Positions 7,466 through 64,000 of a stretch of 64,000 nt of DNA are shown here, piece by piece (the first letter of the stretch is position 1; each line of letters begins with the position of its first letter). The notes below the pieces were generated by a model. It was not told where the DNA came from. It saw nothing but the letters and a program-made list of their open reading frames with translations, and searched no databases. Location: positions 186,001-250,000 of the forward strand of contig DF237012.1 in the NCBI GenBank assembly GCA_000708835.1, in the 5' to 3' direction. A program made the translations under genes and the position numbers. The stretch is from Klebsormidium nitens (taxonomy: Eukaryota > Plantae > Klebsormidiophyceae).

Positions 7466-8386
7466 GGCCGTGCCAAACCTGTCCTTCCTAAAGCTAAGCG
7501 CAGGCCGTGGAACGCACAAATCTAGCTACAAAATTGTCGTGCACCACCCATAAACGCTGAGCTGTCTTCCGGCACCCTCCTTGTCGATAGCTTGAACGTG
7601 AGCTCGCTGTGTCAACTTTCGAAGAGGTCACAGCAACAATGCGGGAGCTCGCTGCAGACTTATAACCACTAGTCAAAGTGAATTAGGTGCCGCACAATGC
7701 CATGCGTTTTCATTCAGACCAAGAAGGCCGATATTCCAGCAGAAGGTAAGAAACAACTCTTGGCCCCTTCCAAGCTGCAAGCTGCATGCAATGTAGGCCA
7801 GGCGTAAAGCTGTTGCGCTTTACTGGCAGAAAAGCAGCTTGTCCTTTGTCATAGTGACAACTCCCTTCCGCCCTGCAGGTTGAACCGCTTTCTCCGAGAA
7901 GCTGGGCCGGCCGACCTTTTTAGCTCTCTAGATTCTTGCAAACATGAATTGTGACAGCCCTAGTGATACTGTAGTGGTCATCAGCTCTTGCAGCAGCTCA
8001 GCTCAACAGCTCAACAGCTGCAGCTCAGCTTATCAACTGGCAATATATATATAAAGCCGTTCTTACCCCTTCTGGCAATCTGACGGTTCTAGTGGCTGTA
8101 CCTCGCGCGCGCAAACTTGCTTATCGACGGTCGGATGCGGTCCGGCACACAAACCTCCGAAACCCGGCGGCCGCGCGATCCAGCGCCCAAACCCGGATTA
8201 GCGCTAGGATGATATATTGATCGATCATATGGAGCTAGCTAGAGTAGGACTAGCTGTTTCATTATGTCCCTAGTGTAAATCAGCACCAGCTAGTCTTAAG
8301 CTGCACTTCCTTCGCCCAGAAACTCGTTTTTGTTCAAAACTGCTGACTGCAGCTGCTTTCTTTAAAACATAACAATCTGTAAAGGC

Positions 8387-16183: not shown

Positions 16184-17777
16184 CCTAGGCTGGTGACTTG
16201 CAAAAGCTTGGTCACATGCCTTTTTGTGCTCTGAAAGCCGAATCAAACCCTTCTGATCAACCAGCTTCGACTTGAGAGCTGATGATGCAAAATTGAATTC
16301 TTAGTGAGACTTAGGATGCAGGATTGAAGTCGCCCGCGGCCCCATGCTGCCACTGCATATTTCCCTGCTGCCGGATTCAGAATGCTTTTGCGTTGCCAAA
16401 ATCAATGCAACCGCCCCGATCCTTGAAGGAGGATGTGTGAAGAACGGGCCATCTAGAACTGATCCTAGGTCCCCTTCTTCCAGACTCCTCCCGAACTCGC
16501 CACGTGCAGAACTGGCGCCGCACCTGGCCGCATCAGCTCCTCAGCCTCTGTCCAGCAATTGAAAGTCCTCCCATATTATTTGGCCCTGGGAGTTCAGCTG
16601 TGCAACCGTTGAACTGCTGATCAGCAATTTTAATATTTAACTCCAGTCCGAGCAGTCGCCTGCGGCCTGGCTTCACTTCGAAATGGTAATGGTTCAAGAT
16701 TCTACTAGACAAACCATTGTCGCCTCTTCACCGAGGGATGGGGATAGCAGAATGCTTCCTGCGGTTGAGATTTGGCGGAGTGGAGTTAACCGCTGCCTAA
16801 TTGGCGGTCAACTACAAACCGTTTCCATGATGGTAGACGGAAAACTAGAGTCTAGAGAGTGGACCGTGACGTGGAGTCCGATCCACTTTGTTAGATTGAA
16901 ACTTTCGCGCCATTCAGGCAGCTCATTCAGGTTGAGGCCAGGGCCCAGGATAGGCAAAGCATTCGGAAATGCTTGCAGGCGTACAATGTCGCAGCTTCTG
17001 CGGCCTTGGTAAGGTGTTTAGTCTGCTCGACACCACAGAAGACAGATGGGGTAGATCTTAAGCGCTGCCATCGGAGGCAACTTACGCTACCAAGAGCATG
17101 TGAGTTCCTGTAACAACCCTTTTCAGTGAGCGTTTCGAAAGATTTGATTGGTTCGCAGACCTCGGCAGTTGCAGTTTTCGTTGGCGTTCCGAGCCTGTGG
17201 TGCTGAGGGATGCCTTGTAGGAGTCCACTATGAATGCTGCAGTCCTGGTCTTCTGTCTTCTATTTGTCAAGCAGACTTCCGACGGCGTCTGGTCTACTTA
17301 TGTGGTCCGCTTTTCCTGGTCTCAATCCATCAATGTCTGGTCGGAGCTCGATTGCTCTAAATCCCTTCTGATTTCAAATGTTTGCCATTGAATGACTCTC
17401 TTTTAGACTCAATAGATTCACTACCTACTTTCCAAAGCAAGAAGGAGGCGCTTTACAATCAGGATCCGCATCTAATGTATACCGTTCAGAAAGGCATCAA
17501 ACCCTTGTAAAGTACTAAGCTAAGCTCTGGGCGCCCTTTTCTAATTCTCATTTGGAAGATTCGATTGAATTCCTGCCCAAGAGCACACAATGGGTCAGAG
17601 CTTGTCCATACATTTGTCCCCACTTGATTTCGTCTCGTCACAGAATGTACTGAAAGGTCCTTCATAAGGCCTCAAATTCCATTCTCAGGTTTGTACTGTC
17701 TTCGAGCTGGTTTATGCTACAAAACCCGTTTGTAGAATCATTGTTCCCGTGTTGAAGCTGCTCTTTCTGTGACCAGG

Positions 17778-19496
17778 ATGGCGTATTACTGTGGCCCCTG
17801 CAACCAGCAATTCCCCTCCCAGCGAGCATATGCCGAGCACGCTGCCGCGCTCCACACACTGAGCCACAAGTGTGCTCAGTGCGGCCGACTCTTTCGCTCG
17901 GAGCAAGCGCTCTCAGAACACGTGACAGTGATCCATCCAATACAGCCCCTCTCAAGGCCCCTTCCCAAGCCGCCCGCCGCGAAACCGGCTCAGAAGCAGT
18001 TGCTTCAAAAGCCTGATGCAACGCAGCCCCTATCGAAGCCCCTCCCAACACCGCCAGCTTTAGAGCAGTTGGCCTGCCAAGACTGCACGGTTAGCTTTGT
18101 AACCCAGCAGGGTTTGCTTGACCACCGGGCCTTGATCCACCCCTCCTGCCTGGACTGCAAGCGCGCCTTTGCCTCTCAGATCGCTCTCCAGCAGCACCGT
18201 ATCCATGTTCACTCCCGATCTAGTTCCCAAGCTGCCCCAGCAGTCGTACTTCCTAAGCCCAAAAACCAACATGCCCTCCAACTGCACAGCGCGTACCTGC
18301 AGAAAGTCCGCTCTAGTTGCGGCAATGACCAGCAGGTTCAGCAGCATGCGCTTGCCAATGTCAGCAAGGGGTCCGGGGCCCCTGGTGAGCAGGGCTTTGA
18401 TTGCGAGGAGTGTGAAAAGCGCTTTTTGTCCTTAGCGGCGCTTGAGCAGCATGCTAAGGATACAAAGGGCCACAAAAGGGAGTTCCAATGCCGGGTATGC
18501 GACCTTGTGTTTCTCACAAAGGCGGGCTTGGGCCAGCATTGCAATGGGGACGTGCATCGGATGCGCGTCGCTAACAACGGCGTCAAAGGGGAGTCCAGTT
18601 CAGGCATGGTTCCTGGAAAGCTCCCGAACGGTTCGCTAAGCGCCCCGAGTGTCGTCCGTTGCGACGTCTGCAACAAGGACTTTGAGACGTTGCAACGGCT
18701 TGCCCAGCATCGGAAGGATACTCCGGGACATGCACAAAGAGTAGTGCTTCAGAGTAGCGTTAGAACCCTACCCCCAAACCCGGGGTTTGGTTTAAGGAAG
18801 CCAAGTGCTGCTCAAGCGGGGGGTTTCGCCTGCCGGCCTTGTCAAAAGGAGTTCGCCTCTCAAGCTGCCCTCGACCAACATTTCAGCAACTCGACCGTGC
18901 ACGCGGAAGCCGACGACCGCTTCGCATGCGGCCCGTGCGGGGCCGTCTTTGCCTCGTCAGCAGAGCTCGAGAGGCACAAGCTGGCCTTGCCCAGTCACGT
19001 AGAGACGTTCGTATGCAAGGAGTGCGACAAGACGTTTAAGTCGGGGCCTGCGCTCAGCCAGCACCTGAGGGACATACATAAGCAGCGTGTCCTGGTCGAA
19101 TCCCACCAAAATCCCAAGTTCGTCCCAGCTAGTAAGCAGCCCCAAGTCTATAAGCCCACCCCGTCCGATACAATGAAGAAGGTGTCTAAGATGATAGAGA
19201 AGCGGCTCGCGGAGCTTCCAGTTCAAGCTTCAATTGAGCCTTTCATTGATGAGTGGCGGCCGGGGGCCTCAAAAGTAGATGTGGGCTCTCAGTTTGATGG
19301 CAGAGCATTCGACGGCGGGGAATCTGCTCCCAACGGGCACGATCAGAATGGTGATCTTGTGAGGGGGCCGGAAGAGGAAGCCGGAACTGATGCGCGGGTG
19401 CAAGAGGTGGAACTTGAAGTGCAGGTGAGCAATCTTTCTTTTGATGGGGGGCGTGGCTTCCATGCAGATTCGGATGCAGGGAGTCACGTGTGGTAG
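17778..19496 (+). CDS. Intronless protein with 10 C2H2 zinc fingers and an acidic C-terminal tail
   Basis: The ORF 17769-19496 (first ATG 17778) holds ten C-x2-C-x12-H-x3-6-H units, e.g. CAQCGRLFRSEQALSEHVTVIH and CKECDKTFKSGPALSQHLRDIH. No TGEKP linkers. Confidence 0.88.
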   Translation: MAYYCGPCNQQFPSQRAYAEHAAALHTLSHKCAQCGRLFRSEQALSEHVTVIHPIQPLSRPLPKPPAAKPAQKQLLQKPDATQPLSKPLPTPPALEQLACQDCTVSFVTQQGLLDHRALIHPSCLDCKRAFASQIALQQHRIHVHSRSSSQAAPAVVLPKPKNQHALQLHSAYLQKVRSSCGNDQQVQQHALANVSKGSGAPGEQGFDCEECEKRFLSLAALEQHAKDTKGHKREFQCRVCDLVFLTKAGLGQHCNGDVHRMRVANNGVKGESSSGMVPGKLPNGSLSAPSVVRCDVCNKDFETLQRLAQHRKDTPGHAQRVVLQSSVRTLPPNPGFGLRKPSAAQAGGFACRPCQKEFASQAALDQHFSNSTVHAEADDRFACGPCGAVFASSAELERHKLALPSHVETFVCKECDKTFKSGPALSQHLRDIHKQRVLVESHQNPKFVPASKQPQVYKPTPSDTMKKVSKMIEKRLAELPVQASIEPFIDEWRPGASKVDVGSQFDGRAFDGGESAPNGHDQNGDLVRGPEEEAGTDARVQEVELEVQVSNLSFDGGRGFHADSDAGSHVW

Positions 19497-42172: not shown

Positions 42173-43161
42173 ATGGCAACGCAAACTGTTCAAGCTTCGC
42201 GTCCAAAGTCAACTCTCCGTGACCTGCTGACAGCAAACGTTCCATTGCCTGCCTGGTTCCAGCACGCCTTTCTTGTCTTGGCGACCTGCCTGGCAGTCTT
42301 GGGGGTTGCCACTACGCCCTGTTTCTGAGCCATTACAAGCAGGTACTGGTGACGTCAGCTAGCAGCAATGCTACCTGTCCTTTTAACGAAGCTGGCGTGA
42401 ATGTCAATGTCAAAATGCCTGAGCTTACGCAAGGTTCTCAGGTGGCTTACTACCCCCCAATCATGACCAGGAACAACAATGGGAAGGGCTCGTGTAACTT
42501 CTCCTGCAGCAGCCCCCACGTTCAGCAGTCAGCTCTAGACTTCTATCTCAGAGGATTCCCAGAGGTTCAGTATGTAACTCTACTGAACATTGTTTCCGCG
42601 GACCCTGTCGAAGAGAACTGCGATGTTGTGTTCAAGTGGACGCACAGAGACGAACTGGGGGCAGCCACAGGAGAAGACTTTCGGAAGTTTGTTTTCCGGG
42701 GGTTGGATGATCCTCACGAGCTTTGTGTCTTTGCGCCCACAGAGATGATGCATCGCTTCTCTGGAAGCGCAGCTGTTCTACATAGCCTGAACCTTTTGAC
42801 AGCTCCCAGGTCGCACGAAGAGACAAAAGTCTTCTTCTGCAAAGACAAGATCGCTGAACGGAACGAACGTGAGATTGGTGCAAGGTGCCAGTTCTTAGGA
42901 ATCTGGCCGTCCTGTCGGTACGTTGATGCGACCTGCCACCTAAGCAATCGAGATTTTGAAATTGAGGAAAGCCTTCCATTCGCCGGCGACAAAGCAGAGG
43001 CGGGAGACATGAGCTTCTTGAGGCGCCTTGCCTTCTGTGATCGAGACCCGGCCCGGGAGTGTTGGGAGAATGTGATCTTTGGGGGCCTGTTTGGCTTTAT
43101 ATTCCTCTTTTACATTGGACCGCTCGGTTTGCTTTCACTGGCAGCAAATAGGAAGCAATAA
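42173..43161 (+). CDS. Intronless membrane protein of unknown function: N- and C-terminal hydrophobic helices around a Cys-rich loop; one apparent frameshift
   Basis: ATG 42173 gives MATQTVQ...FQHAFLVLATCLAVLG. The frame changes near 42301-42312 into ORF 42349-43161, which ends in VIFGGLFGFIFLFYIGPLGLLSLA. It has a clear paralogue at 44668. Confidence 0.6.
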
Positions 43162-44667: not shown

Positions 44668-45600
44668 ATGGCGACGCACCGTCCTGGTTCTCAAGTCTCG
44701 CGTCCAAGCACGAATACTATTCGTGCAGCAGACGCACCCGGCCTGCCTTGCTGCGTCCAGCAGGCATTCTTCGTTCTTGGGACCTGCTTGGTAGTCCTAG
44801 CATTTTTTTAACGCCCTGCACATGAGATCCTACCTACACATGTTGGATACAGCGTTAGCAAGCATTAATGTTACCTGTCCTGTCCAGAACGCTAACGCCA
44901 GTCTTGAGATGCCTGAGCTTACGCCAAATTCTCAGAAAGCTGATGTCATCCCAACGTTGATAAGGTACAACGCAAGAAATAGCTCATGCAACTTTTCCTG
45001 CAGCAGCCCCCAAGTCCAGCAGTCAGCTCTAGACTTTTATCTAAGAGAGTTCCAAGAGGTTCAGTCTGTAAGTATGCTGAAGAGCGTCGCCGGGGACTCT
45101 GTCAAAGAAAGCTGCGATGTTCTGTTCGAGTGGACGCACAGGGACGACCTTGGGGCAGCCTCAGCACAGGACTTCAGGAAGTTTTTCTTCTAGAAGGTTA
45201 CCGATTCTCAGGAGCCCTGTTTTTTTGCGGCCAGAGAAATGAGAGGAGGTGTGCTCATGTCCCGCAGGGCGTTTGCCACTGCTCCTGGACTACCGGGGTC
45301 AAAGCTTCCAGAGAAGGAGACAAAAATCTTTCTCTGCAAAGAGAAGCTTGCAGAACGAAGCGGACGTGACTTAAGCGCAAGGTGCCCGTTCTAGACTGGC
45401 CGTCATGTCAGTATGTTGATGCATTCTGTCCCGTTCCCCCCCATGAACAAGAGGATAGTACTAAGAAAGAGGCGGGCGAAGGAAGCGTCTCGAGGCGCCT
45501 TGACGTTTCTAAGGAGGAGGATGACTCAAAACATTTTATGGTCCTCATTGGAGCATCAGTGGTGATGCTACTCCCTATGGCCTTTCACAGGGAGGATTAG
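44668..45600 (+). pseudogene. Tandem paralogue of the 42173 gene with several disablements
   Basis: Shared blocks include CNFSCSSP.VQQSALDFYLR.F.EVQ, CDV.F.WTHRD.LGAA and ETK.F.CK.K.AER. Lesions: +1 in the T7 run at 44803-44809, an in-frame TAG at 45191-45193, and a frameshift near 45390. Confidence 0.7.
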
Positions 45601-48401: not shown

Positions 48402-51400
48402 CTAACCGCAGGGAGCCACGTTGGTGATGAGCTTGGTGTAGTGCTGGGCGATGTTGGGGTTGTTGAGGAAGCAGACGGTGCCGCCGCCGCGGTTCGCCTG
48501 GGACGCCTGCCGGTTCATGTCGCCGATGCACACCGTCTGGGTGCCCTGTGAACGGCGACATGGAACCGATTTTAATTTATGGGTCCATGAAAGCTGATAT
48601 GAAAGATTCAGAAGCTGTGAAGATCAATGGCCAGATCATGTCGCCGATGCGCACCTTCTGGCTGCACTGCAGAGATTAGCCGGCTCAAGCTTCAGTTTAG
48701 GAGACATGAAGAGCTCCACAAAGTCCCTACAATAGTGAGGTAGATGCAAACTGACCCTGACGATGCTTTGGAGTTTTTCCGGATCACAATCCAGTTGAAG
48801 CAGTTGAAGAACTTGAGAATCTGATTTAGGTTCGGAGTCAGCACTTGACCCAGGGAGTCGCTTCGGGTGCAGAATTTCACAGCAACTAGGAACGGTCGCT
48901 GATTCAGAAAGCGGACTTTAAGCGCGGAGGGTTGGACGAAACTTCCGTCGCACAGAAGTAAGGTATCTGAGTCTTGAGACGCGCTTTTCCAACCGCCCTG
49001 ACAGGTTTGGTCATCGAGCACGCTGGAAGAGGTGACGCGTCCCGCTAGCAAATCGCAGCGGAGAAATCACTGGCAAAACTTGACTGCCGTGCAGAACGGT
49101 TGTACGAAAGCATGCGAACGGTTGTACAACAGGAAAAGAGAGAGCCTGCTCTACAAAGGGACGCGGACTTACGGAAGGGTACGGGACGCCCCATTTGGAG
49201 TGGTCGGCTGCAGAAACGAAAGGAGCATTGGTTAAATTTGCGGCGAGTTGGCTGGAATTAAGCGCCAGCGGTAGAGGATCCAGGCAGCAAAGCTCTTCTT
49301 GAAGAATTGTGACGGGAGTGTGTAAATCGCTGTTGACTAAGACTGCACGAGATGACAGACTTTTCAAAGACTCGACAGATTCAGAACGGGGTCCATTCAG
49401 CTGCAATGAAATCGAAAATAGTAGATTGGGATTGAGGATCGCACTGCCCAGCTTTCTGGTTTTGCAAAGGAGTCCGTACAACATTGAAGCAGATCCAGAA
49501 GAGCAACTTTCCACGTACGGTCAACCACTTCGTGACCACCGGCTCTGGATGTTGGATGACGGCTTCCGCCAATCAATGCATCATATGATGAGTTTGTAAT
49601 AAGATCTGATCCGTGTCGAACTCCTCTGAAAAGCTGACCAGTCAACTCATACTTCAGCTTTGCCGCTCTACAACGAACACCACGACCTAAGATTGACGAC
49701 GAGCTGAGAGAGTTATCACCGCACGTGCGAGAGACCGGGGCTTTCTCATCACCGCCCACTTCACACGTGATGGCCAGTGCCCCGCAAATCAAAGACCCGC
49801 GCTGAAGTAACTTTAGCACGTGCGAGNNNNNNNNNNNNNNNNNNNNNNNNNNNNNNNNNNNNNNNNNNNNNNNNNNNNNNNNNNNNNNNNNNNNNNNNNN
49901 NNNNNNNNNNNNNNNNNNNNNNNNNNNNNNNNNNNNNNNNNNNNNNNNNNNNNNNNNNNNNNNNNNNNNNNNNNNNNNNNNNNNNNNNNNNNNNNNNNNN
50001 NNNNNNNNNNNNNNNNNNNNNNNNNNNNNNNNNNNNNNNNNNNNNNNNNNNNNNNNNNNNNNNNNNNNNNNNNNNNNNNNNNNNNNNNNNNNNNNNNNNN
50101 NNNNNNNNNNNNNNNNNNNNNNNNNNNNNNNNNNNNNNNNNNNNNNNNNNNNNNNNNNNNNNNNNNNNNNNNNNNNNNNNNNNNNNNNNNNNNNNNNNNN
50201 NNNNNNNNNNNNNNNNNNNNNNNNNNNNNNNNNNNNNNNNNNNNNNNNNNNNNNNNNNNNNNNNNNNNNNNNNNNNNNNNNNNNNNNNNNNNNNNNNNNN
50301 NNNNNNNNNNNNNNNNNNNNNNNNNNNNNNNNNNNNNNNTGACCGAGGACTTACACGTCACCGCCCACTTGCCGGTCGTTGCCGAGATCGCCTGCGCCTC
50401 GGGCACGGTGATATTTCTGATAGTGTACGAGCCGAGAGTGGAGCCCATTGTGGGGCACGAGTTGAGGTTGGGGGACCCGTTCTGCCACGTCTCCCAGGCC
50501 ATGGACAGCCCGAAGTATGGCTCCACCAGGGACTCGTACAAACCGATGCCGGTGCTGCAGGGTTTGACAGAGGTTTACGGAGAGGAGTTTTGGTGTACGA
50601 CTTCAAAATTTAGAAAGTCGAGTCGAAGAAGTAAAGATTATAGGAACTCAATCCTTTTCGCGGTTGGAAGATCTCTGACTTGGGGAATTGCGAGAGTGAC
50701 GACAGCATCGCGAGATCTGGGCATGCAGCTCATACCTTGAGCTTTAAAGGCCAGATTACTAGGACCCCTGAACCAAAGGACGGATTACAAGATGTCAACG
50801 ACGGCTGCGAACACCTCCCAAAGGGATGGGGAGCAGATAGCGCTTGCTTCAGACGTCCTTTCTGACGCTTGCAGGAAAAAATCCCTCTCTCTATCTTTGA
50901 AGCACAGGCCTGTCAAAACCCAGCGCGCCTCGCTTTCAGATCCACTCACGAAGAAGCCTCCTGAAATTGCGCAAGCGCGTGGGCCGCGGACGTGGCGACA
51001 GTGCCCCCGTAATCAACTTCGATGATCATTCAAACAAACAACGCGCATATGACGATTCATTTGGTCATTGGCCGATCCAAAGCACACGCAGTCGGAATCT
51101 CGCTCTTGAAAGCACAGGCATGATCGAGTAGAATGCGCATTATTCCCCACGAAGAAGCCTTCTGGAAGAGCGTGAAGGCTCTGCTCCGGACGTGGCGATC
51201 GAGCCCTCGGAAACAGCTTCGATCATCCCTCAAAGATTCTGAAAGCATATGACGCTTTCTCCAGGCGTTCACTGACTCAAATCGCTTGCAGACGAGAGCA
51301 GTCGATTCTACTTGAAACGCAGGCATAGATCAAAGGCGCGTTGTTGCTGACATGCACTTAAGATCTCTTACGATGAAGCCTCAAAGTAGAAGGGCCAAGC

Positions 51401-54400
51401 TTTTAAATTTGCTCACGATGAAGCCTTCTCGAATAGCGCAAACGCCTGGCCCCCGGAGGTGGCCACCGTGCCCCCGGAAACGGTCGTCGGGGCGCCCGGT
51501 GTGGGCGACCCGTCCTTGGCCGCAATAAGCGCCGCGAAATGCGGGTAAGGCCCGGCGATTGCGCTCGGGAGCTGGGAGTCGTAGATCCAAAGACCGGCGG
51601 TTTGGATGAACTTCGCAACGCCGTCGATCTGGGCGGCAGGGAGAGTGGCGCACAGGAAGCTCTGGCCGTAGATCAGCTGGCCCGAGGAGATGCCGGCGTA
51701 ATTGCTTGAAAAAGGACGCACAAGGTGGTTAGCTTAACCCGTGTGTGGGGTGAGCATATTTGCTAACGAGCTGGTTCCAAAAGTCACACTGCAATCAGCA
51801 TCAGCCGAAGACAGGCATGGGACCCACCGACCCCAGGTGCTTATGTCGACCAACTTTTGGCGACCACTTTCACCGTTCGACACTGGTTGATAGAACAAAT
51901 GACGACGTCTTCATTGCTTTCCATCTCATTTCTAGCGAGTGCCGCGACATAGGGGTCTGGCTGAGCGCCTCTCTTCGGCAGCGGCGTATTCCGCCAGCCA
52001 TTCACGTGCTACAATCGGAACGGCACGGGCCTAGGCGAATTCGGTGAACCATTGTACGGATGATCAATTCAAGCAACGGAACGGCACTGGCGCGAGCATT
52101 CCGGCGGACGATGTCTTTACGGGCACGGGCCCGAACATTCCGGCAGACAACTAATTCTGCAACGGAACGGCACGGGCGGAACGGCTTACTGGTCAACGGC
52201 GGGTCCGGGAAGTTGGGCGCGCTGTGCACGAGGTAGAAGCCCTGGTTGGCGGTAAACCCTAAAACCCCCTTGGCGTGCGCGCCGCCGGAGCCCGCGCTCG
52301 TCGTCACGGAGGGGGGGTAGTCGTCGTTCCACATGGCGTACCCGGCGGTGGCCTGGAAAACAACGGTCAGAGAGCGGTTGACAAGCTGGTTAAGGCGTTT
52401 GAAACGGCGTTCCAGTGATCAAGACCCGGCGCCAATTCATGGTTTTGCGGTTGCTGTTGTTACGGAAGGGGGGGAGTCGTCGTTCCACATGGCGTACCCG
52501 GCAGTGGCCGGGATAACAAGGGGTACAGAGCGGTTAAGAGATTGGTGATCAATGGATTTGGAACGGCGTTCCAGTGATTAAGAACCGCTAATGCAGAGCT
52601 TTTGCGCTCACAGTGAGCGCTCTGATCTGCTTTCCCAGTCGTGAGCCAGCGCTTCTCGTTGATCTCATCAAAGAGATTTATGGCGGCGTGAAGATTGACA
52701 CCTAGTTGTTGTAGGTCTGGTAGAGCATGTTTACGAGCGCGTCATTGCGCGCAATAATTCGCGGCTCTTTCTAAAAGAAGCGCAATTCCGATGATGACAT
52801 TGTAATGAACTGCGGCGGTGTGACTCTCACCTGGTTGTCGTAGATCTGGTAGAGCAAGCGCGTCATCGAGCAGGTGGTATTTAGAATCAGCGCAGACATA
52901 GCGCATTCACATTCAACGAACCAAAGAGAGTCACGAAGATGTAAAAACTCTTACCTGGTTGTCGTACATCTGGTAGAGAGTGTTTGCGAGCGCGTCATCG
53001 CGCGCGGTGGTTTGCATGTTGGTCTCGATCGCCCACGCGTTGATAGCCGTCAGATCGGTCGTGCTGTCAATGTAGGCGTACATCCCGCCGTCCGGATTTG
53101 TGGCGCTCTGCTTCGGAAACTTGAGCGCGACCCACCAGTCCACGTCAGCGCCTGCGGCGTTCTTGCAGCTGAAGGTAGCTGCGGCGAGAATAATGGGGCA
53201 GTTATATAAACAGGTGTAAGAGTTTATAAAAGCTGTGGACTTTGTCGGAAAATCTGGTCTAGGATCGTGTTCGATTGCCGAGTAAGCTCTGCTTCAAGAA
53301 CCTAAGCGCGACGCACCAGTGCACGTCGGCGCCCGCGCGTTCTTGCACCTGAAGGTGGCTGCGGCAGAAACATTGGTGCAGTGAGTGTTAATATACGAAA
53401 CACTTTCGAGCTTTGTGCTCGCCTTGACTTCAGGGTATAACGGGGGTTAAAGCGCTTGGTGCCCTCAGATCGGAAGTTCGAGAGCCATTTACCAGTCCAG
53501 CCTAAGTAGAGTCAAAAAGCGTTATGAAACTCTGGTGACTCTCTTGATGTACCCAAGAAGCATTTGACTGAAGGTAGGGCGCCTGCAAGACGGGTGGGGT
53601 TGATCGAGTGGTGAGAGTAGGTTCGGCTGCGGAACGCGTATGTATTCTTGGCTTAAGGATTTTCTTAATCAAATTCCGGGATCACCCGAATCTTATGTCA
53701 GACGACTGTCAGGTGATATGAGAGTTACCGTAAAGTGAGCTAAGAAGATACGGGGATAGGCCAAAGTCTTTTTGCTCGCCTTGTTTTCTTTAAAAAGCGG
53801 AGGTTGAAGTGCTGGGCGCCCTGTATCAAGAATCTGAGCGCTACCAACGTGCCCTGTCAATTTCGAAAGCACTTATCGGTCCAAGCTCAGAGCATCCGAA
53901 AGGGATTCGAAAGCTTGAATCCACGAAGACAACTCACTGGATTTCTGAAGCAACCCACTAGCAGCATTGCGAAGGAACCAAAAGAAAGACTCTCTTCCTG
54001 GCAACTTAGGAGTAGAGGAGCACGCTGTCCGGTCGCCCAGTGACATCATGCGGTTGCGCTTGCGCGAGACCTACTCACATGTGGATTGACTGGGAGCGGG
54101 GGTGGGGCTGTTGGTCGTGGAGGCAGAAGTGGGGGCAGGAGTGGAGGGGCACGCATTGGCAGCCCCCGGAGTTATGGCGACCAGCTTGAAATTGGCGCCG
54201 TTGTCGTCCGTATCGGTTCCGTCGGAGCACCTGGAGAGGGGGTCGTGGGATGCTGTGAGGTATCTTGACTGGACCCAATCCTAGCCGTTCAAACTATGAA
54301 AAGCCAGCCCACAAGTTGAAAAGGGGGTTGCGGAATGCTATTCTAGCTTTCCAAACATAAAAGAGTCAGCCCACAAGTCGGCGCCGGTGTCGTCTGCGTC

Positions 54401-57024
54401 AGTGCCATTGGAGCACCTGGAGGAGGGAGGATTGAACTTTTCCAATCGAGCGCAAACTTAGCCGCTCAATCGCGAAGAAGTCTTCCCACATCTTGGCGCC
54501 GTTGTCAGTTGTGTCAGCACTGTCGGAGCACATCAAGATCGAAAGGGAGTAGTGAGGACTTCAACTTTGACCCAAATTCAGCCATTAGGACCCGTTCAAA
54601 GACAGAGGAGTCGCCCCACTGGTTGGCGTTCGTCCGTGTCAGCACCGTCAAAGCACCTGGAATGTTGGGGTAAGAAGTATACCGGGGAAGAAGATACGAA
54701 TCATACTCATTTATACGTAGAGAAGATGGCCCAGAAGTAGGCACCCTTTTGGTCTGTTTCGGCTCCATCAAAGCACCAAAAGAAGCACGGTAGTGAGGTG
54801 GTTTGAAGGACTTTTAGTAAAGGCTTGAAGGAAAGAAGTAAAGCCCATGAGTAGACACCATATCAGCATCGTCGGGGTAACTGGCGAAGGGGGTTAGTCA
54901 CAGAGGTATCCTATTACTTGGACTCGACTGCAGCCGTTCAAAAGGAAGAAGTCGGCCTACAAGTTCTCTATCCTTAACCTATGAATCAATTGGATCAACA
55001 AGACAAGGGGAGGAACGAGTCCGTGTGAATAAGCAAGCCTTCGCTCCAGTGAGTAAGCCAAGGCGGAGGGGCTCGCACGACTATAGCACGGCTCTGATCT
55101 TCAAGCTTTTAGAAGGACGGAGAAAAAGTAGAGGGTACTTTTTGGAAACCTTCAAGCTTCTAGCAAAGCCTTGCAGAGTTGCGATGGAGGCTACAACCAT
55201 ACATTAAGACGGACCATGCGTTCTCTACGTTGCAAGGAGTCCGGAAGCAAAATGAAGCACATATCCCTCGCATGAGAGCTTGCTTCAAACAACGTGTCCA
55301 AGAGAACGACCTCAGTCATCTAATAACAGTAAGAGAACTACTTTACAGCGGGAAATTATTCTGGTCGTTCTCACCAGGGTACACTCTTGAGACTCAACAA
55401 CATCTAAAGCAGATCAAGCCAGTATTGATGATATCACGGTAGGCCTAAACAGGTGAGACTTAAACATCTGAAGTATGTGCATGCACCTTGCAAGAAAGTC
55501 ATCCCGAGCTCAGCTTACTCTTGGACTTCCAGTTTCTTCACTCAATATGACTGTAAGCCCGCACCTGTTAGCAGACAGAGATCAAGGAATAGGTGCAACC
55601 ACTGAGCTGCAAAAAAGTGACATGCTTGAAGATACTGACCTGGAGAGGGATTGTGCAGCGGCCCCGTCGTCAGTCCCTGCGGAGGTGCCCTCCGAGTACC
55701 CGGGAACTGTTCCCTCGTACGAAACTTTATCGATTATAGTTCCGGAGGGGTTTGCAAGGGCGATGGCGTCACTGGCTCCGTTTTGGATCAGGTCGGTGGC
55801 GGGGGAAACTTGCTGTAAGGGAGGGGTTCAAAGAGTGGGTAACGAGTGGGTAAGAGAGATATTAAGCCATGAAGAGGGTTCAGAAGAGTGGTTCGGAGAT
55901 GGTGATCAATGATGCGGATAAGGCTCTAGAAATTCGTTCAGGTATGGACACAGGGACAGGAATCATGAGGCAGGTGATCTAAGAGACTGGGGGGGAAAAG
56001 TGGTTAAGGTATGAGGCAGAGGGGTCAAGACAGAAGTGTCAACAAGAGACTGGGTTAAGGAGAGGGCTCGAGCGACTAGACAGGGGGCTGATTCATCAGG
56101 CAGAGAGATAGAATATGGGCTTTGCAATGAGAGAACTATGTGTGCAGGAGTTTGGTCAAAAGACGGGGTGGGAATGATTGTCGCCAAAACAAAAGTTGAA
56201 ACTATTAGGTGCAAACAGGTGACTGACCACAAGGGGTATTATACTCTGTCACAGAAGATTACTTGAGGGCGGAGTCCTTTCAACAACAAAGGGTTAAGGA
56301 AAGGGTAAGACAATATCTTGAGAGACAAGGACGGTAAAGCTTGTTAGCTGGGAGGGCTCTCTTCCCAGGATTGACAAGTTCAAATACATGTTAAGTAGAC
56401 GCCTGACGCCAAGTGAACCGCAGAAAGCCATCAGTGGATGCATGCAAAGGGCTTCCTATCGACGCAGAAGTGACAGTCAAGGTCTGGATCCCAGCTGAAC
56501 CATTCGAGGGTCTGTGAGGTGATTGATCATCCGTTTCCCCTCACGACACTCAAATCAAGAGAAGATAGAGTCGTGAAGAACCCCCGATTGCCAAAAACTA
56601 ACTCAACAAATTCAGGCCACAATGTGCCCCCTAGGTTGCTTACTTTCAACATATTTCAGCTATTCACACTCGCGGCTGAAATCTGATCGCATCAGCCCCC
56701 TACCTGATTGCAGTTTGCCAAGGTCCCCCCCTGCGTTGAGCACACCACAAAGTACCCCCCCGGCGCCAGCGTCACAGGGGCGAGCGCAATCGTCTTGTAC
56801 ACAGCAGGGGGGCTTGCCCCCCCGTTCACAAGCTGGAGACTCCACCCGCTGAGAGCAATGCTAGACCCCCCCACATTTTTGAGCTCAACGAATTCTGCAG
56901 TGTCTGTGCTGGGTTGGTCATAGTCGACTTCGTTGATGACGAGAGAGGTGGAGCCGGCAGCAGAAAGAGCGGCGCAGGAGAGGAGAACTAGGAGGGTGAG
57001 GAGGCGCTGCCGGGGAGCAGCCAT
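48402..57024 (-). CDS. DNASE2: Secreted fusion: signal peptide, lamin-tail domain (LTD), Pro/Thr/Ser linker, deoxyribonuclease II (PLD superfamily)
   Basis: Exons: 56704-57024 (signal peptide; LVINEVDYDQPSTDTAEFVELKN), 55640-55812 (DLIQNGASDAIAL..IDKVSYEG), 54079-54230 (DGTDTDDNGANF..TPGAAN, then linker), 52955-53178 (SCKNAAGADVDWWVALKFP), 52190-52352 (WNDD..AHAKGVL..YLVHSAPNFP), ~51417-51705 (YGQSFLC..FEK), 50355-50554 (LYE..ETW..KWAVT) and 48402-48545 (VCIGDMNRQASQANRGGGTVC). Phases fit except at 52190/51705 and across the gap 49827-50339. Confidence 0.9.
48515..48670 (-). repeat. One degenerate copy of the acceptor plus start of the last DNase II exon
   Basis: Plus strand catgtcgccgatgcacaccgtctgggtgccctg (true, ~48517-48548) versus catgtcgccgatgcgcaccttctggctgcactg (~48638-48670). 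Confidence 0.75.
52320..52990 (-). repeat. Junction copies from both ends of one DNase II intron (52353-52954)
   Basis: The exon-5 start plus acceptor region is duplicated at ~52470-52590 (gtcgtcgttccacatggcgtacccggc). The exon-4 end plus donor is copied at ~52826-52870 (ctcacctggttgtcgtagatctggtagag) and ~52700-52755. Confidence 0.88.
53135..53375 (-). repeat. One degenerate copy of the acceptor plus start of DNase II exon 4
   Basis: accagtccacgtcagcgcctgcggcgttcttgcagctgaaggtagctgcggcga (true) versus accagtgcacgtcggcgcccgcgcgttcttgcacctgaaggtggctgcggcaga (~53316-53368). Confidence 0.85.
54190..54790 (-). repeat. Four degenerate copies of the acceptor plus start of exon 3 of the LTD-DNase II gene
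   Basis: The plus-strand core ...gtc.gagcac(ctgg) ends at 54230 (true), 54416, 54531, 54656 and 54776. The acceptor CAG is kept in the 54416 and 54656 copies. Confidence 0.82.
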
Positions 57025-59391
57025 GATTCGTGAGCTGAGGAAATTGGCAGCTGATCACAATTGATCACTGGTTATGGGAAGGTGGAATGTTGGCTTTTTG
57101 AAAGAGGGAGAATGTTGAAGGCTTTCTCGAGCTTTCCTGACTTCTTCTTTTGTAGAGCATGGATTGACTACAACCAGTTTCGTAAGGAGATCTAGAGAGA
57201 AGTCCCCATCAAGAGGGCAAGAGGGTTCCTCCGCATTGATCAGGGAGCAGGGCTGAAGCTGGAGGGATCGCGCTCGATCACAGTCTCGAGGAGGGAAGCT
57301 GATGCTACCCACCTGCAAAAGCTAGGCGCCCACATTGCTGATTGCAAGTACTCACTGGCTGATGCTCAGAAATGTCAACGGCAGCTCTCAAATGTGGACC
57401 TTCGTACGGAAATTGGAATGAAAGCCGGCACAAAGCGAGCGACATCCTGCACAGTGCATTGAATGCTGGTACATGTCGGTGTGCATGATGCACAGACTAT
57501 ATTCTAGGTACACCCTGGCATCTTGCTGACGCATTGTTGACCTACTTTCCTTCTAATTTGATGCCGTCTTACGTCAGCATTCCCGGAGGAATGTGCGATA
57601 TCCCACTTGCACTTGCGAATGTACCCCGTTTCCGGACCTCCATTTCTTGGCGACCAGACCCGCATTCGAAGCACTAGAGGGACGCTGTATTTGAGCACTA
57701 CACAAAGTTGGGTTTATTTCTGTGTGCAGTGCACGCGATTCCATACAACAGCTGGACAGCGTAAGGCCGCGCCACGTGTCCGAAGCACGTATCTCCGCTA
57801 ACGCCCAGCTTGGGTTCCAGAACCCCTGGGCCTCGGCCCTATCGTGGATCTGATCAACATGCTTAAATCACAGGTGGGGTCTCACTCACAGCCAAGAGAT
57901 ACAGGCGGGGGGGAAAGAAGAGAGAAAAGAGAAACAAAGAGAAGAAAAGTGGAAATGAAAGATATATAAGAGACGTTACGACCGCTTATACGACGAAATC
58001 AGGAATATCAAATGGTTCCCAGATGGCCGTACGATACCGTGGCTGAAATACTCTGACCGTCGAAATTTAGAAAGTCAAGAAGTGACGAACAAATGACGTT
58101 GCATCAAACTTCATCTCCGGCTGCTCGGACCCCGGTCTATGATCGACACGTGGTCGTTTTGACACGCCGCCCAATCAAGTTGCCATATTTTATGTCATGT
58201 CGCATACTAAGTGGGACCGATAATGCGGCGCCCGCGGCGCTCTCAGCCGATTCGAGGATAACACTTCAAATTTGGTAAAGTAAGCTTTAGGTAGAAGTAA
58301 CCCAAGCAGCCTGGGTGGGGTTAGTTTGGGGGTTAGGGTGGTTTCGGGTGCGGAGCGTAGTGTTAGGCTGGGCCGAGCTTACTATATCTAGAGCTTACTT
58401 TACCTGAATTGAAGAGACATGATTCGAGGCTCGTGGGACGAGCGTCGGACTGTGTCTACTTTGACGCGGGGTGAGCATCCGGCGGCCATGTGCAAAACAT
58501 AGGGCGTTATCGGACGGTTGCGGTTTCTTTTCAATCTGATTCGATGATCGAGGTTCCTTCATGTTTACAGAGCGCGCCGGGACGTTCGCGATCGTCGAAC
58601 AGCCAGACTTTTAAGTCAGTTGAAACTACTAGCCACGGCGGACGCATTTTTTATGAGATCATCCGCCGGCAACGCTTGAAAATGAAAGTTAGCGCACTCC
58701 ATAAACGTACTGCATGAGTACGAATTAGCGTGCGAATCAAACATCTAGGAGAGATTCTAGGATGTGAGGGAGTGAGTGCTTGAGGTTTTCTCCGTCCCAA
58801 AATTGCCTCTATCATCCACACAGATTGTTTCGGTTGCTTGGGGGTTTGCCAGAGCTCCTTTCCTAAGTGAAGGGCTGATTGAGATCACCAATCAGTTACA
58901 TGAACGACCTGTTGTACTCAACCGTCAATCTGTAGGTGAGGTTGATTGCTTCTTTTTCGGCCGCAAGAGGAGGGAAAGCTTTCAGTCTACTCACATACGG
59001 ACTCTGACGGAATACGTCTTACCATTGCACCGCACATTCTGCTCACTCGTACTTTAGTTTTCCTGATCTCTGCGTTCCGGTTAACTACAACGCAGACGTA
59101 CTTGAGACGCTCAATAACTGGACCCCTTCAAGAACTCCCTTAGCAAGTGGCTACTTATTTCGCCGCAGTTCAGCTGATGTCAGCGACTTCCCTCAATTCC
59201 AGGTTCTCTAAGAGGCTCTTGCCTTATTGCTTTGCTAACCAGTCACTCTGAGCTAGTCACATCTCCCTAAAAAGTTGCAAAGCCCTTTCAAATCCTTCAC
59301 AGCGTCTTTCAAAGCCCATCGGCTGTCTTACTTTCTCCCTTTCCTGCTCACTTATTCCAAGCCCCATTTGTCTATCTCCGTTACAAGATTG

Positions 59392-62300
59392 CTAATTGAA
59401 CCCTCCATTTACACACGCATCGCTGCCCACGATGTGCGGCCGCGCCAAGACTTCCCAAAATCCTCTCAGCTTCACGTCCCCGGCCGTTCCGCCAATCCGT
59501 TCCGCTTCCGCTTTTCCGTACACGATCCCTCCAATCGTCGCGAACGCCGTTCCGCCCGACCACTCCGCTTCCGCACTGGCAGTTCCGTAGGTCGCTTGAT
59601 AGCACGCCGCGGCGTTGAGGTGCCTCTCCTCTAGTTTTGGCTTCTTACTCGGATCTTCGTTTTCTCGCGCACTCACGGGTGGGCCTTCGTCGAGTCGCTC
59701 CCGAAAATGCGCGAGCAGCGCCTCGAAGGCAGCGCCCACGCGCTCCTGCCGTTCCGTCTTTTCCTTCCTTGACTGCGCCGTCCGTGTTCCGCTTCCGCTG
59801 CCCCCCTTCCTGCCCTGAACTCCGGGCCTGGAACCAGACTTTTCCGGATAGAATTCCGGCCGCTCCGACGTGTCCGCTCCAACGCGAGGAGCTTCGCGCA
59901 TTACATCTTCACCCTCCGTCCTCTCGTCTCTGCTTCTGGTCTCGCTACGTCTACCTTTCCGCCCCCCTCCCAAGTCCATTTTCCCGATTGTGTCTCCCAC
60001 TTCTGTCACCCCCAATCTGTCGACCTCCATATCTCCATTCTCATCTTCCAAACATGTTCCTCTTCCTTTTGGCTCAACGTCACTGCCTGTCATCTTTCCT
60101 TCTTCGTCCTCCAGAGTTACCTCGTCGCCATCTTCCGCCTCCGCCTCCCCCTCACCCAGTTCCGCTCCGTCCAGCTCTGTTCCGGCCGAATCAAAACTGG
60201 CAGCCCCCACGATCAGATCCTCCTGGGCCTGGAGCCCATAAGTGTCCATCAATTCCAATACGCTGCTGTCGTACTCCGCCTTCAGGCCACGTGCCCAATT
60301 CAGGCGCGCGTCGCTCACGCTGACGTCACGGAACTCTGCCTCGTCCGCGGGCGCCGGGCCGTGCGTGACGTCAGCCGGGTAGAAAGCCGCGCGGTTCCAT
60401 TCTGCGGTGTCCAAGGCGCGGAAGAGCTTCCCTGAGAAGAAGGAGTGAAGCTTCGAATAGGTCGATTTTTGATTTGCAACAAACTTCTGCTAAAATAGGA
60501 AGACAGCAGTCTGGAATTTTTTGTCGAGAAAGCTTCCAATCAGGTAAGTCTAACGAATGATGAACGCTGGTATCTGCTGAGGCATATAGAAGTCCCTACA
60601 GAATTGCGAACCCGCCAGTGACACCCCAGAAAACACTAATCAAATGCTCCGCAGCCGCACCTTCCTAGCCCCCTAACTCACTTCACCGCCCCAGGGCTTC
60701 GACGTTACCGTGCAAGGGGCTTACCCTTTGTAAAATTCAATAGAAATAAGGCCTTACCTGGATGTATTCGACTGCGGGGATCATGCGGCTGCGGCGCTTC
60801 CTGACAAGAGTCGAGGCTTGAGGGTCTTTGGAACAAGAAGTACAAGAGAGCATAGCATAAGGAGAAGTGATTGGAGGGGACCGTATCAGTGGTGGTAACA
60901 GTGGTGGTAAAGCTGCCACGTCTTCAGGATTTCACTCATTCGAACGAAACAATGTGAGTAACTCCGCACGCGTGCTTGAAAACGCGACACCTCGGCCTGG
61001 TTTCTGACATAAACCATTGGTGCCACTCCCTCCGCTTGGACAAAGGCTCGCTGTCATAGGAGCCGGCTTGCGACTCAGCTTCAGCCTTGCAAACCGGGTC
61101 ATGTAGTATACTCCAGGTTAAGACCGTACTCTTAGAAGTGTTACTGAAGACCGGATTGTCCCTGTAAGAAACGTGACGTCAGCGCCGGGCACTCACCGAG
61201 CGCGTTCTGGCTCGCGTAGCTCTCCTCGCCGCGCTTCTGCATGAAGTCGGGGTACGCGCGCGGCCGCAGCTCCGCGGGCAACACCACGCTAAACCCCGAC
61301 TTGACGAAGTTGCTCGCGTCGAACGCCATCTGCGCGAGGCGCGCGCAGTCGGGGTCGTTCGCGCCGCGCGGCCGCGCGTCGCAAAGCGCCATATGGGCGA
61401 CGCAGATGGCGCCTAGGTTGTCCTCGCGCCGGTGCTTCAGCTGGAAGAACCGGTCATCCTGAGGAAAAACGGGTTATAGAAAATAAAACCCAGGGTTAGG
61501 TTGAAGGGTCTGGCAATTCTCAAATGCCACGATGTCAGCGTGTCTAGAAAGCTTGGTTGTCTTAGGCCCCCTGATGACTCTTTGCTGATGATCCGGTTTC
61601 CGAGATAAGTTTCACAAAATCATACGCGTATCGAGCTCCGAACTCCAGAGAAGCACCCTTTACGAGGCGTTTTGGAGGGTACTGGATACTTAACTCAAGC
61701 TCCCACGTGCTTCGTCAGGGCGCTTTGGAGTGTGCAGATCAATCCAGAAATGAGGCCGCTTCCCACCGACAATCAAACGAGTTCGCTCCCTCTTCTTCAT
61801 GTGCCTGAGCAGTTCTTCTGACGCCTTCGTCAGTAGATGACAAGTAGTACGTATAAGGTGTGTTACATTTGCCAACTAGCAATCATATCATGGGCGCATT
61901 AGACTTTGAGATAACTTAACGCAGAGGCTCTTCACCTGCACTGTCAGATTCCGGTCTTCCGGTGGCATCGGCGGACTGCTCTCGTACTTGAACGGCGGAA
62001 GCGACGTGTCGGGCACTAGTCTTTGGTCCCAGAAGACCCAGTACCTGTCGCCATCCTGCAAAGCAGTCAAACAATGGAACAATCTGACGACTATCTGAAC
62101 ACATTTATAGATGTCTTCAGAAAACGCAAAACAATCTCGTTCGTGTTGAACGTTGCTCATCCAGAGAATGTCGACGCAATCGTAGTTTTGGCTGGAGAGA
62201 ATCTCCTGGAGAAGATTCTGTATGCTTTCTCTTCTTCAATCTTCCAGGTAATGCACGTGTATATTTTGATGAACATTTGCGATGGAACAGAAATAGCGTC

Positions 62301-64000
62301 TTCTTTCTAGACAATCTGCTGTTCTTTCCTACAATTCATAAATCTCTCTTGAGGGCATCACTGACTTGTTTCCCCATCAACTTCTTGCATAAAGTTTCTG
62401 CTGTGAGTCTCCTCCCAATAAGCCAGGAAACATGTAGCATAACAATCAAAAAGACAGTAGATTGTTACGTTCAAGCGTTTAGATCCGACCAACGTCGGGG
62501 CACTCGGATTTTTTGCGTGCTGCATTTACTCACCAGGTCGCCGTTCGTCAAGTTCACCGATTCCGGCCTCTGCCGTCCCAACACCGAGAATACCACCACG
62601 TTCTCCACGTGATGCAGCTCAGGACAATCTACCGCCCGCAAAACCCGGACGTCCCCTGGGTGAAGCCCCGGGTTTCTGTAGACGATAACCCGCCCGGTAA
62701 CCACGCCCCGACCGCTCAGGCTCACAAAGATCTGCCCCGGCGCGAGCACCCTCAGCTCGTCCACGACGCCCAGTACGAGCGCGCCATCTGGCACGTAGAT
62801 GCGCGCGCGGTCGCGCAGCTCGCTGACGTGGCGCTCGCGCATGCGCGCGACCACGCGGCACTGGAAGGGGGACAGCGCGTCGGATGATGCTCCCGGCCGC
62901 GGCGCCAGGAGCGCGGCCGCCGGCGAGCGCGCGCCCACGAGCGCGCGGAGGGGCGCGGTAGTGCGCCCCGTCAGCATGACGTCGTCGAAGGTGCGAAGGT
63001 GCTCCGCTTGGAGGGTTTCGAAAACGCGCGCGGGAATGCCGCGCGCTTCGAGGAGCTGGATGAGCTGTCGGCCGAGGAAGGCGGGCTTTGGCGCGGACGC
63101 CCAGCTGATCACTTCGATCGTCCTGTGGTCCGACTGGAACTTGTCCATGCTCGGGCGGATTCCGACGAGGTTCCGCCCGGCCCAGGGCGGAAACACTTGG
63201 AGCATGCCCTTGCACCCCCCGAACCGGATCTGGAAAGCAGCGACGGACTTGGGGTTTTCCACTCCCGGCAGTTTTGCCGCTACCATTTCCGCGAGGTCTG
63301 GGGAGACGCGCCCGCATCCGTCCGCGAAACTCAAGCCGTGTCGAACGACTTCGTCCAGCGTCACGACTTCGTCCTCTTTCAGCGTTACAGTAGGAATTGT
63401 GGTAGAGAGAACCAGCCCCGGTCGGACGGCGTGCTTGGCGGCTTCCCGGATTCCGTCGAAGTCCCCCATGGCGGACCGGATCTGGTCGCGGGAAACGCTG
63501 CCCGGAAGGTCTTCCTCGGCGAACGCCCAGAAGGAGAACCCGCAGACCTGGCTCGCTGACGTGGCAAGCTGACGGTAGCGGCGCCCACCAAAAAGAAAGT
63601 CGATTTTCGAGAACCGGTCGTAAACGGCGCTTCTGGGCTCCCACCCGTCTTCCGGGGGGTTCCTCTCCCGGCTCTTCAGCGGCCCCCCCGACAGAAGTCC
63701 CCCGTCTTCGTCGCGGAAGGAAACTCTGAGGAACCGCCCTTCCTTGGATAGCTCGGGGTAACTTCTGAGCAACCGGTTGGAGGGTTCTGCGACCGGTAGA
63801 GAAGCGAAGGCTCTGCACGGGGTGATGACCAACCGGTAGACGAGTACCGTGTGCGGCGGCGGCGGGGCGCGCCGCGGGGGCAGGGTGTGGAGGCTTAAAA
63901 TGTCAGCCGTCATGCGCGACAGAGCCGCGGTCGGGTCCCAGATGCGCTTCCCCTGCGCGAAGAGCTTCCCGAGCCCAACCACAACTAGTTCCTCTCCCCC
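59392..64000 (-). CDS. RDR: Cellular RNA-dependent RNA polymerase (RDR, DLDGD type); 5' end lies beyond the window
   Basis: Exon 62534->64000 is open to the window edge: RFLRVSFRDE, FADGCGRVS, AFQIRFGGCKGML, IRPSMDKF, GVVDE, VYRNPGLHPGDVR, NGDL|. Exon 61936-62055 gives |DGDRYWVFWD, completing DLDGD. Exon 61197-61458 gives NLGAIC..AFDASNFVKSG..YPDFMQK..SY.SQNALG, and exon 59392-60431 starts |GKLFR. All phases are compatible. Confidence 0.93.

Follow-up and report, generated by a model that had tools for sequence, protein, structure and literature searches.

The window analysed here, that is the whole stretch of 64,000 nucleotides of the streptophyte alga Klebsormidium nitens (GenBank assembly GCA_000708835.1, contig DF237012.1, positions 186,001 to 250,000 of the forward strand), carries on its minus strand, from position 57024 down to 48402, what we read as a single nine-exon nuclear gene. 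To this reading, which is based on sequence comparison, we give a probability of about 0.7. The gene would encode a protein of the secretory pathway, in which a signal peptide, a lamin-tail domain (LTD), a Pro/Thr/Ser linker and a catalytically complete DNase II follow one another. One chimeric gene of this composition had been proposed from the letters of the window alone (hereafter, the sequence-only reading), and it is supported by the exon phases, by the Pfam matches and by two contigs from other samples, L001 (Logan) and L086 (ENA). The fusion protein is already present in the public databases as GAQ80833.1 (P0227 in our collection, annotated "deoxyribonuclease II", 661 amino acids); no paper describing it was found, and each of its components is of a known kind.

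A nine-exon gene for a secreted chimeric nuclease

Read from the DNA, the nine open exon pieces of Table 1 have compatible phases throughout and are separated by introns with canonical GT-AG ends. Their lengths add up to 1725 bases, corresponding to 575 codons, only if exon 6 begins at 51732, and a Pfam scan carried out exon by exon covered both the LTD and the DNase_II profiles end to end. The peptides quoted in the sequence-only reading are all present on the minus strand, namely INEVDYDQPSTDTAEFVEL in exon 1, IQNGASDAIAL and DKVSYEG in exon 2, and DGTDTDDNGANF and TPGAAN in exon 3. The junction from 54079 to 53178, by which that reading joined the two halves, is phase-compatible, one base on one side and two on the other forming a Ser codon. 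That reading rightly claimed a full DNase II, and both HxK motifs are there; the second of them lies in exon 8, a piece of 35 bases that is present also in GAQ80833.1 and had been overlooked.

Table 1. Exons of the LTD-DNase II gene and the assembly gap, in positions of the window.
Feature	Positions	Strand	Content
Exon 1	56704..57024	-	ATG; signal-peptide-like hydrophobic leader (about residues 1-24); initial two thirds of the LTD
Exon 2	55640..55812	-	Final third of the LTD; Pfam LTD profile 81-108
Exon 3	54079..54230	-	LTD C-terminal motif (CSDGTDTDDNGANF...TPGAAN) and Pro/Thr/Ser linker
Exon 4	52955..53178	-	Start of mature DNase II (SCKN...VDWWVALKFP); Pfam DNase_II profile 1-67
Exon 5	52190..52352	-	First catalytic HxK motif (GGAHAKGV), HSAPNFP; Pfam DNase_II profile 60-119
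Exon 6	51417..51732 (alternative start 51704)	-	NYAGISSGQLIYGQSFLC...FEKAS; Pfam DNase_II profile 125-210
Exon 7	50355..50554	-	LYESLVEPYFG...WETWQNG...GKWAVT; Pfam DNase_II profile 217-281
Assembly gap	49827..50339	.	Inside intron 7; decayed copies of the exon 7 edge on its flanks
Exon 8	49173..49207	-	35 bases; DHSKWGVPYPS with the second catalytic HxK motif; flanked by CAG/ and /GTAAGT
Exon 9	48402..48545 (coding 48545-48405, stop 48404-48402)	-	GTQTVCIGDMNRQ...RGGGTVCF...VAPCG; Pfam DNase_II profile 280-326, 2.2e-12

The exon edges, in which the splice point is marked by a slash, agree with this model. Exon 1, matched by the LTD profile from 3 to 72 (6.2e-15, 56 bits), ends in phase 0 at the donor CAG/GTAGGG; its translation is 88% identical to that of L001 and 92.5% to that of L086, and both the ATG and the donor are kept. 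Exon 2 ends with two bases of a split Arg codon (donor CAG/GTCAGT), exon 3 with one base of a split Ser codon (donor AT/GTGAGT) and exon 5 with a one-base overhang at the donor A/GTAAGC, which is kept in L001. The donor of exon 7, T/GTAAGT, lies 16 bases ahead of the assembly gap, and the final Cys of exon 9 falls within a few residues of where the homologues end. The leader of exon 1 resembles a signal peptide, with a charged n-region, the hydrophobic core LLTLLVLLSCAALSAAG and small residues ahead of the LTD, and it is similar to the leaders of the bacterial homologues and of the K. nitens protein KFL_001810135 (P0285, 1029 amino acids). Two other candidate features were tried and rejected. 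The end of exon 7 (TTGKWAVT) could be taken for a decayed copy of the DHSKW exon with a GC donor at 50373; since GKWAVTS aligns to the SWxxTx segment that precedes DHSKW in the family, the GTAAGT donor at 50354 is the right one. An additional exon between exons 6 and 7 (51060-51329) gave no Pfam match, and decayed copies of the exon 6 donor edge lie in that interval.

The order of the exons is found again outside the window. The 8.4-kb contig L001 holds exons 1-7 in the same order, with 84-87% nucleotide identity, conserved splice sites and introns that can no longer be aligned, and L086 holds exons 1-5 with 89-93% identity, so that three independent assemblies are colinear. The linker of L001 is longer by 7 codons, yet its frame reaches the phase-1 donor and the matching acceptor before the DNase II exon; since this donor and acceptor are conserved in spite of the difference in length, the frame is kept through the variable linker. 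Exon 4, 84% identical to L001 at the amino acid level, opens at the mature N-terminus of DNase II, with no Met upstream in frame and no signal peptide of its own, and a hydrophobic N-terminus was seen in every full-length DNase II relative examined. Moreover, the ratio of nonsynonymous to synonymous substitution rates (dN/dS) against L001 was 0.12 in the LTD exons and 0.19 in the DNase II exons 4-6, with dS of about 0.5, and on these values both halves are under purifying selection. The LTD-DNase II arrangement was in place before at least three Klebsormidium-like genomes diverged.

The DNase II half is catalytically complete and groups with green algae

The analyses that need the joined protein were made on the public protein P0227. 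Its Pfam matches are well above the cut-offs, with 71.8 bits for LTD (PF00932; cut-off 34.3; profile positions 3-108 of 109) and 243.3 bits for DNase_II (cut-off 23; positions 1-326). The catalytic motifs are HAK in exon 5 and DHSK in exon 8, and in an alignment of 43 sequences H101, K103, D297, H298 and K300 occupy invariant columns. The conserved cysteine set of DNase II was checked as well (N-terminal C, FLC, CIGD, GGGxxC and C-terminal C): in the same alignment C151, C313 and C332 are invariant, C353 is nearly so, and the N-terminal Cys of SCKN aligns. An AlphaFold2 model of residues 216-568 of P0227 reached a mean predicted local distance difference test (pLDDT) of 88.7 and a predicted template modelling (pTM) score of 0.91. 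Its best match in the PDB was the Burkholderia DNase II 5I3E (E 2.7e-22, template modelling (TM) score 0.74), which is also the sole solved relative by sequence, followed by PLD3, PLD4 and PLD; the modelled half thus has the predicted PLD-like pseudo-dimeric fold.

Among the named DNase II relatives are proteins of Asterochloris, Apatococcus and Myrmecia, with 35-39% identity. In a quick tree of 79 proteins the K. nitens DNase II domain fell in one clade with these three and with an unlabelled protein, P0120, with a support of 97 in the approximate likelihood-ratio test (SH-aLRT). Since it groups with the chlorophyte DNase II proteins, this half looks vertically inherited. DNase II has been reported in green algae and has not been reported in land plants (PMC9208542, PMC8245530); the view, suggested by the sequence-only reading, that a DNase II is unusual for the green lineage did not survive the comparison with the literature and with these three algae.

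The LTD half probably derives from resident ExeM/NucH-like genes

A scan of bacterial genomes with the LTD returned 558 relatives, the best 80 of which are 42-64% identical and mostly lie right behind a signal peptide. The matches of exons 1, 2 and 3 adjoin one another on the LTDs of these best 80 of 558 loci, which run uninterrupted where the alga has introns, and the identity to the N-terminal LTDs of the ExeM/NucH-type nucleases is 55-64%. Six of the eight nearest bacterial proteins that were checked consist of a signal peptide, an LTD (with or without Big_5) and Exo_endo_phos, which is the ExeM/NucH type. By these comparisons the LTD is bacterial-type and of the sort found in secreted nucleases, as had been claimed, and the statement that it has since gained introns agrees with the spliceosomal introns that split it. 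The transfer of the whole LTD-DNase II gene from bacteria was considered and rejected, DNase II being found in none of the 80 bacterial LTD loci.

One of the bacterial loci deserves a separate description. On L085 (ENA ERZ23476923, positions 1-20522) a nuclease with LTD and Exo_endo_phos_3 is found among phosphate genes, its neighbours being PstS-like binding proteins, parts of a phosphate ABC transporter, CHAD, a polyphosphate kinase and PhoX; a similar neighbourhood of CHAD and nuclease was seen on the contig of P0223. The setting of L085 is consistent with a role of bacterial LTD nucleases in scavenging phosphate from DNA.

LTDs of the same kind occur elsewhere in Klebsormidium. A second LTD exon in the sample of L001 (P0200, 68% identity) lies on a Logan contig of a Klebsormidium relative (L084, SRR23617307, positions 10001-18607), which bears a complete ExeM/NucH-like gene of bacterial type with LTD, OB-like region and Exo_endo_phos; it is split by at least 8 introns, has a Pfam Exo_endo_phos match, and bacterial proteins are colinear with it over 8.5 kb. 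Both introns within its LTD stand at positions and in phases identical to those of the fusion gene. K. nitens itself has KFL_001810135, which combines LTD and Exo_endo_phos and shares with the fusion protein 64% identity along residues 1-227, a range that takes in the signal peptide. Separate phylogenies of the two halves, as the sequence-only reading had suggested, gave different neighbours: the DNase II domain went with the chlorophytes, and in the tree of the LTD part of exon 1 the window, L001 and L084 stood together in one clade (100/99), with bacterial sequences around it. Exons 1-3 of the fusion gene are paralogous to the corresponding exons of the resident Klebsormidium ExeM/NucH-like genes for extracellular nucleases, from which they were copied. 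Since the intron positions are shared, the algal LTDs form this well-supported clade and the similarity to KFL_001810135 extends into the signal peptide, the most likely source of the cassette (signal peptide, LTD and linker) is an ExeM-like gene that was already resident and intron-bearing, part of which was duplicated and shuffled as exons, and not a direct transfer from a bacterium. Of the horizontally acquired bacterial module that had been proposed, the bacterial character stands; most likely, though, it did not arrive as a loose module, given that Klebsormidium has whole intron-bearing genes of the ExeM/NucH type.

Distribution of the fusion

No LTD was found in any of the 150 nearest DNase II representatives, in the 45 profile hits or in the top 120 whole-protein hits, and apart from GAQ80833.1, which came up in a look-up of cluster members, no protein with both LTD and DNase_II was found. 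A scan of metagenomes with exon 4 gave 264 pattern matches and 0 relatives. In the searches made, then, the combination was not found outside Klebsormidium and does not seem widespread, and a fusion inherited vertically across the green algae, which would have spoken against the earlier proposal, was not seen. The literature gave no paper on DNase II together with Klebsormidium and none tying Klebsormidium to LTD or ExeM.

The closest fetched locus outside Klebsormidium, L003 (positions 9342-12925 of an 84-kb ENA contig, ERZ22921136), is an intron-split DNase II gene that resembles P0120; it has no LTD, neither in the gene nor within 9 kb upstream. There DHSKW is contiguous with the preceding exon, so the K. 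nitens intron 7 is absent from it.

The public protein model

GAQ80833.1 maps to the exons of the window with 100% identity and already joins the LTD to DNase II; its junctions from exon 1 through exon 5 and from exon 6 through exon 9 are identical to those of the present reading. It differs at the passage from exon 5 to exon 6, where exon 5 is extended into the intron (52146-52189, minus strand) and the segment NYAGISSGQ is skipped. This motif of exon 6 is conserved in P0120, in Apatococcus (P0006) and in L003, and the extended segment of exon 5 has a low block pLDDT, 69, in the predicted structure; judging from the alignment, the public model is in error at this junction. At its 3' end the natural stop is spliced past and 93 residues are added from 46558-46280 (minus strand); this tail has no counterpart in any aligned homologue and no Pfam match, and the 3' end is probably mis-modelled too. 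Flagging these two likely errors, the skipped NYAGISSGQ and the 93-residue tail, is a practical use of the present analysis.

Weighing the single-gene reading

Several points weigh against the single, functional gene described above and against the history proposed for its parts. The signal peptide was called by eye and by similarity, and the DNase II tree is a quick one with few labelled rows. Continuity across the gap in intron 7 is supported by homology, and no independent contig spans this intron. The contigs of four putative K. nitens RNA runs gave nothing on 51400-57050, which is not proof of silence; a search of sequencing runs returned no run with this stretch, and the protein collection contained no transcript-derived protein of the fusion gene. 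This collection holds one representative per 90% cluster and P0227 stood behind a fragment of 102 amino acids, so that other fusions could be hidden in the same manner. The clearest anomaly is at the acceptor of exon 6, where L001 has CAG/GC and the window has CAAG/C (start 51704): the AG is moved by one base and the frame is broken. An upstream acceptor, TTAAG/CT, with the exon starting at 51732, restores the frame and adds about 9 residues, and weak alternative donors at the exon 5/6 junction would restore it too. The change could mean that the 51732 acceptor or an alternative donor is in use, that the assembly is in error, or that the copy is freshly damaged. As regards the gap, the DNase_II profile runs unbroken across it with no position hidden, P0227 matching 1-326 in one stretch, and in an alignment of eight sequences the exon 7/8 junction GKWAVT-S-DHSKW fits the family pattern SWxxTxDHSKW without gaps. 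Expression and activity of the gene are putative, which limits the weight of the finding.

The displaced AG at exon 6 and the missing RNA contigs are what could be expected if the fusion were functional in the genus and the K. nitens copy were silent or recently decaying, with an acceptor mutation that breaks the frame in an unexpressed gene; it fits with this that the public model remains in frame only by skipping the conserved NYAGISSGQ. We nevertheless regard a decaying copy as unlikely. An in-frame acceptor is available upstream and gives a loop of the same length as in P0120 and L003; all exons are free of stop codons and of further frame breaks; exon 6 itself has a dN/dS of 0.08; the deviating base could be an error of the assembly; and a gene that is induced under particular conditions could be missing from the RNA contigs. 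Quite improbable, in our judgement, is that two adjacent genes were wrongly joined, namely one for a small secreted LTD-only protein, made by exons 1-3 and closed by a TAG that lies two codons inside intron 3, and another for DNase II. A stop codon does occur at most two codons past the donor of exon 3, no RNA evidence joins the halves, and the public model was predicted automatically and is wrong in other places. Against such a pair of genes, exon 4 lacks the start codon and the signal peptide that its full-length relatives would lead one to expect, the phase-1 donor and acceptor and the frame through the linker are conserved in L001, and between exons 3 and 4 nothing is conserved apart from decayed copies of the exon 4 edge.

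A direct entry of the LTD from a bacterium into the DNase II gene, in which the algal ExeM/NucH-like genes had no part, has in its favour that the best bacterial LTD identity (up to 64%) is about as high as that of the algal paralogues (64-68%). We hold it to be very improbable, on account of the two intron positions and phases in common with the ExeM-like gene of L084, of the single clade of algal LTDs (100/99) and of the signal peptide, a fast-evolving sequence that is clearly similar to that of KFL_001810135. An artefact, by which LTD and DNase II exons were mis-scaffolded around gaps, deserves almost no credence: the window has six gaps, one of them within the gene, but the sequence is gap-free from exon 1 to exon 7, and L001 and L086, obtained from other samples, show the same order on single contigs. 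The single chimeric gene thus remains the reading that we adopt.

A possible origin and role of the fusion

In the mechanism that we propose, the cassette of the first three exons, which a phase-1 intron links to the DNase II body, would have displaced by exon shuffling the original signal-peptide exon of DNase II. The protein would be secreted or routed to an acidic compartment, where it may cut DNA at acid pH without metal ions, as DNase II does. Our best guess for the LTD is that of a non-catalytic helper, which may tether the enzyme to polymeric DNA, to the wall or to the matrix, and the fusion could act in the breakdown of extracellular DNA as the acid-range partner of the metal-dependent ExeM-like nucleases of the alga. 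For the helper role the precedent is weak by analogy: deletion of the LTD lowers the in-vitro activity of ExeM and leaves its plate activity unaffected (PMC6085458), and the LTD of Xds is dispensable for activity and localisation (PMC6746945), so that in vivo the deletions have barely any effect. Put together, these steps would describe a modular toolkit for extracellular DNA, in which a bacterial ExeM/NucH gene was acquired, gained introns and multiplied, and its cassette was then shuffled onto the endogenous lysosome-type DNase II, re-targeting an acid, metal-independent DNase to the wall or to the surface facing the soil, with the LTD holding it on DNA or matrix. We offer this larger picture tentatively, as a possible account that is more doubtful than probable.

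The main value of the case is evolutionary, because it offers a traceable path from bacterial gene transfer through intron gain and growth of a gene family to the shuffling of a cassette exon set onto a native enzyme. If this is true, it would be a documented example of a horizontally acquired bacterial domain turned into a shuffled eukaryotic exon module, in a streptophyte alga near the origin of land plants, a group in which transferred bacterial genes have been argued to aid life on land. The fusion would also provide a testable function for the poorly understood bacterial LTD and a natural experiment on its role in nucleases, a question left open by the deletion studies of ExeM and Xds.

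Exon-edge copies and neighbouring genes

Between 48636 and 54777 of the window, most introns of the fusion gene contain decayed copies of the neighbouring exon edge, splice site included. We counted about 3 extra copies of the exon 3 acceptor, 1 of the exon 4 acceptor, 2 of the exon 4 donor, 1 of the exon 5 acceptor, 2-3 of the exon 6 donor, 1 of the exon 7 donor (just after the gap) and 1 of the exon 9 acceptor. L001 shows 5 copies of the start of exon 3 and 6 of the start of exon 4, spaced by 125-190 bases (3687-4327, 4843-5762 and 7456-7671). The copies were detected by blastn and are missed by Tandem Repeats Finder, being too diverged. The gap of intron 7 probably sits in an array of such copies.

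Upstream on the same strand, at 62474-64000 and 59395-60489 (minus), lies a gene for an RNA-dependent RNA polymerase (Pfam RdRP, 329 bits), the last sizeable open piece of which stops near 59395, about 2.3 kb from the start codon of the fusion. Two similar open pieces on the other strand, downstream at 42223-43158 and 44801-45190 (plus), match DUF7074 with 36 and 41 bits, and look like a tandem pair with gaps between them.

Comparison with known nucleases

With the DNase II family (PF03265), represented by the enzyme of Burkholderia thailandensis (5I3E/5UNB) and by the lysosomal DNASE2 of animals, the fusion shares the full profile, the pair of HxK motifs, the cysteines and the fold of 5I3E, and with the eukaryotic members also a putative N-terminal secretory signal. 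It differs from the family in its N-terminal LTD and Pro/Thr/Ser linker, which were seen in no other DNase II in the three sets compared (150 representatives, 45 profile hits, 120 whole-protein hits). The same holds within its own clade: the green-algal proteins of Asterochloris glomerata (P0055), Apatococcus fuscideae (KAK9842121.1) and [Myrmecia] bisecta (KAK9828635.1) group with it, but the chlorophyte DNase II proteins carry a short signal peptide of their own directly before the conserved Cys and have no LTD.

The bacterial nucleases ExeM, NucH and Xds, built of signal peptide, LTD, OB fold and Exo_endo_phos, resemble the fusion in their N-terminal layout, in which a leader of the signal-peptide type runs directly into an LTD opening with LVINEVDYDQP (PMC6085458, PMC6746945). 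Their catalytic domain is of the metal-dependent EEP type; the fusion has instead a PLD-type DNase II, metal-independent by family, and is without the OB-fold region. P0227 has no Exo_endo_phos match and is not a member of the ExeM/NucH family, with which the N-terminal cassette alone is common. The nearest counterparts of this cassette are therefore to be found within the genus, in the ExeM/NucH-like genes of Klebsormidium (KFL_001810135 and that of L084), which share it with the fusion and keep the bacterial OB and Exo_endo_phos body where the fusion has DNase II.

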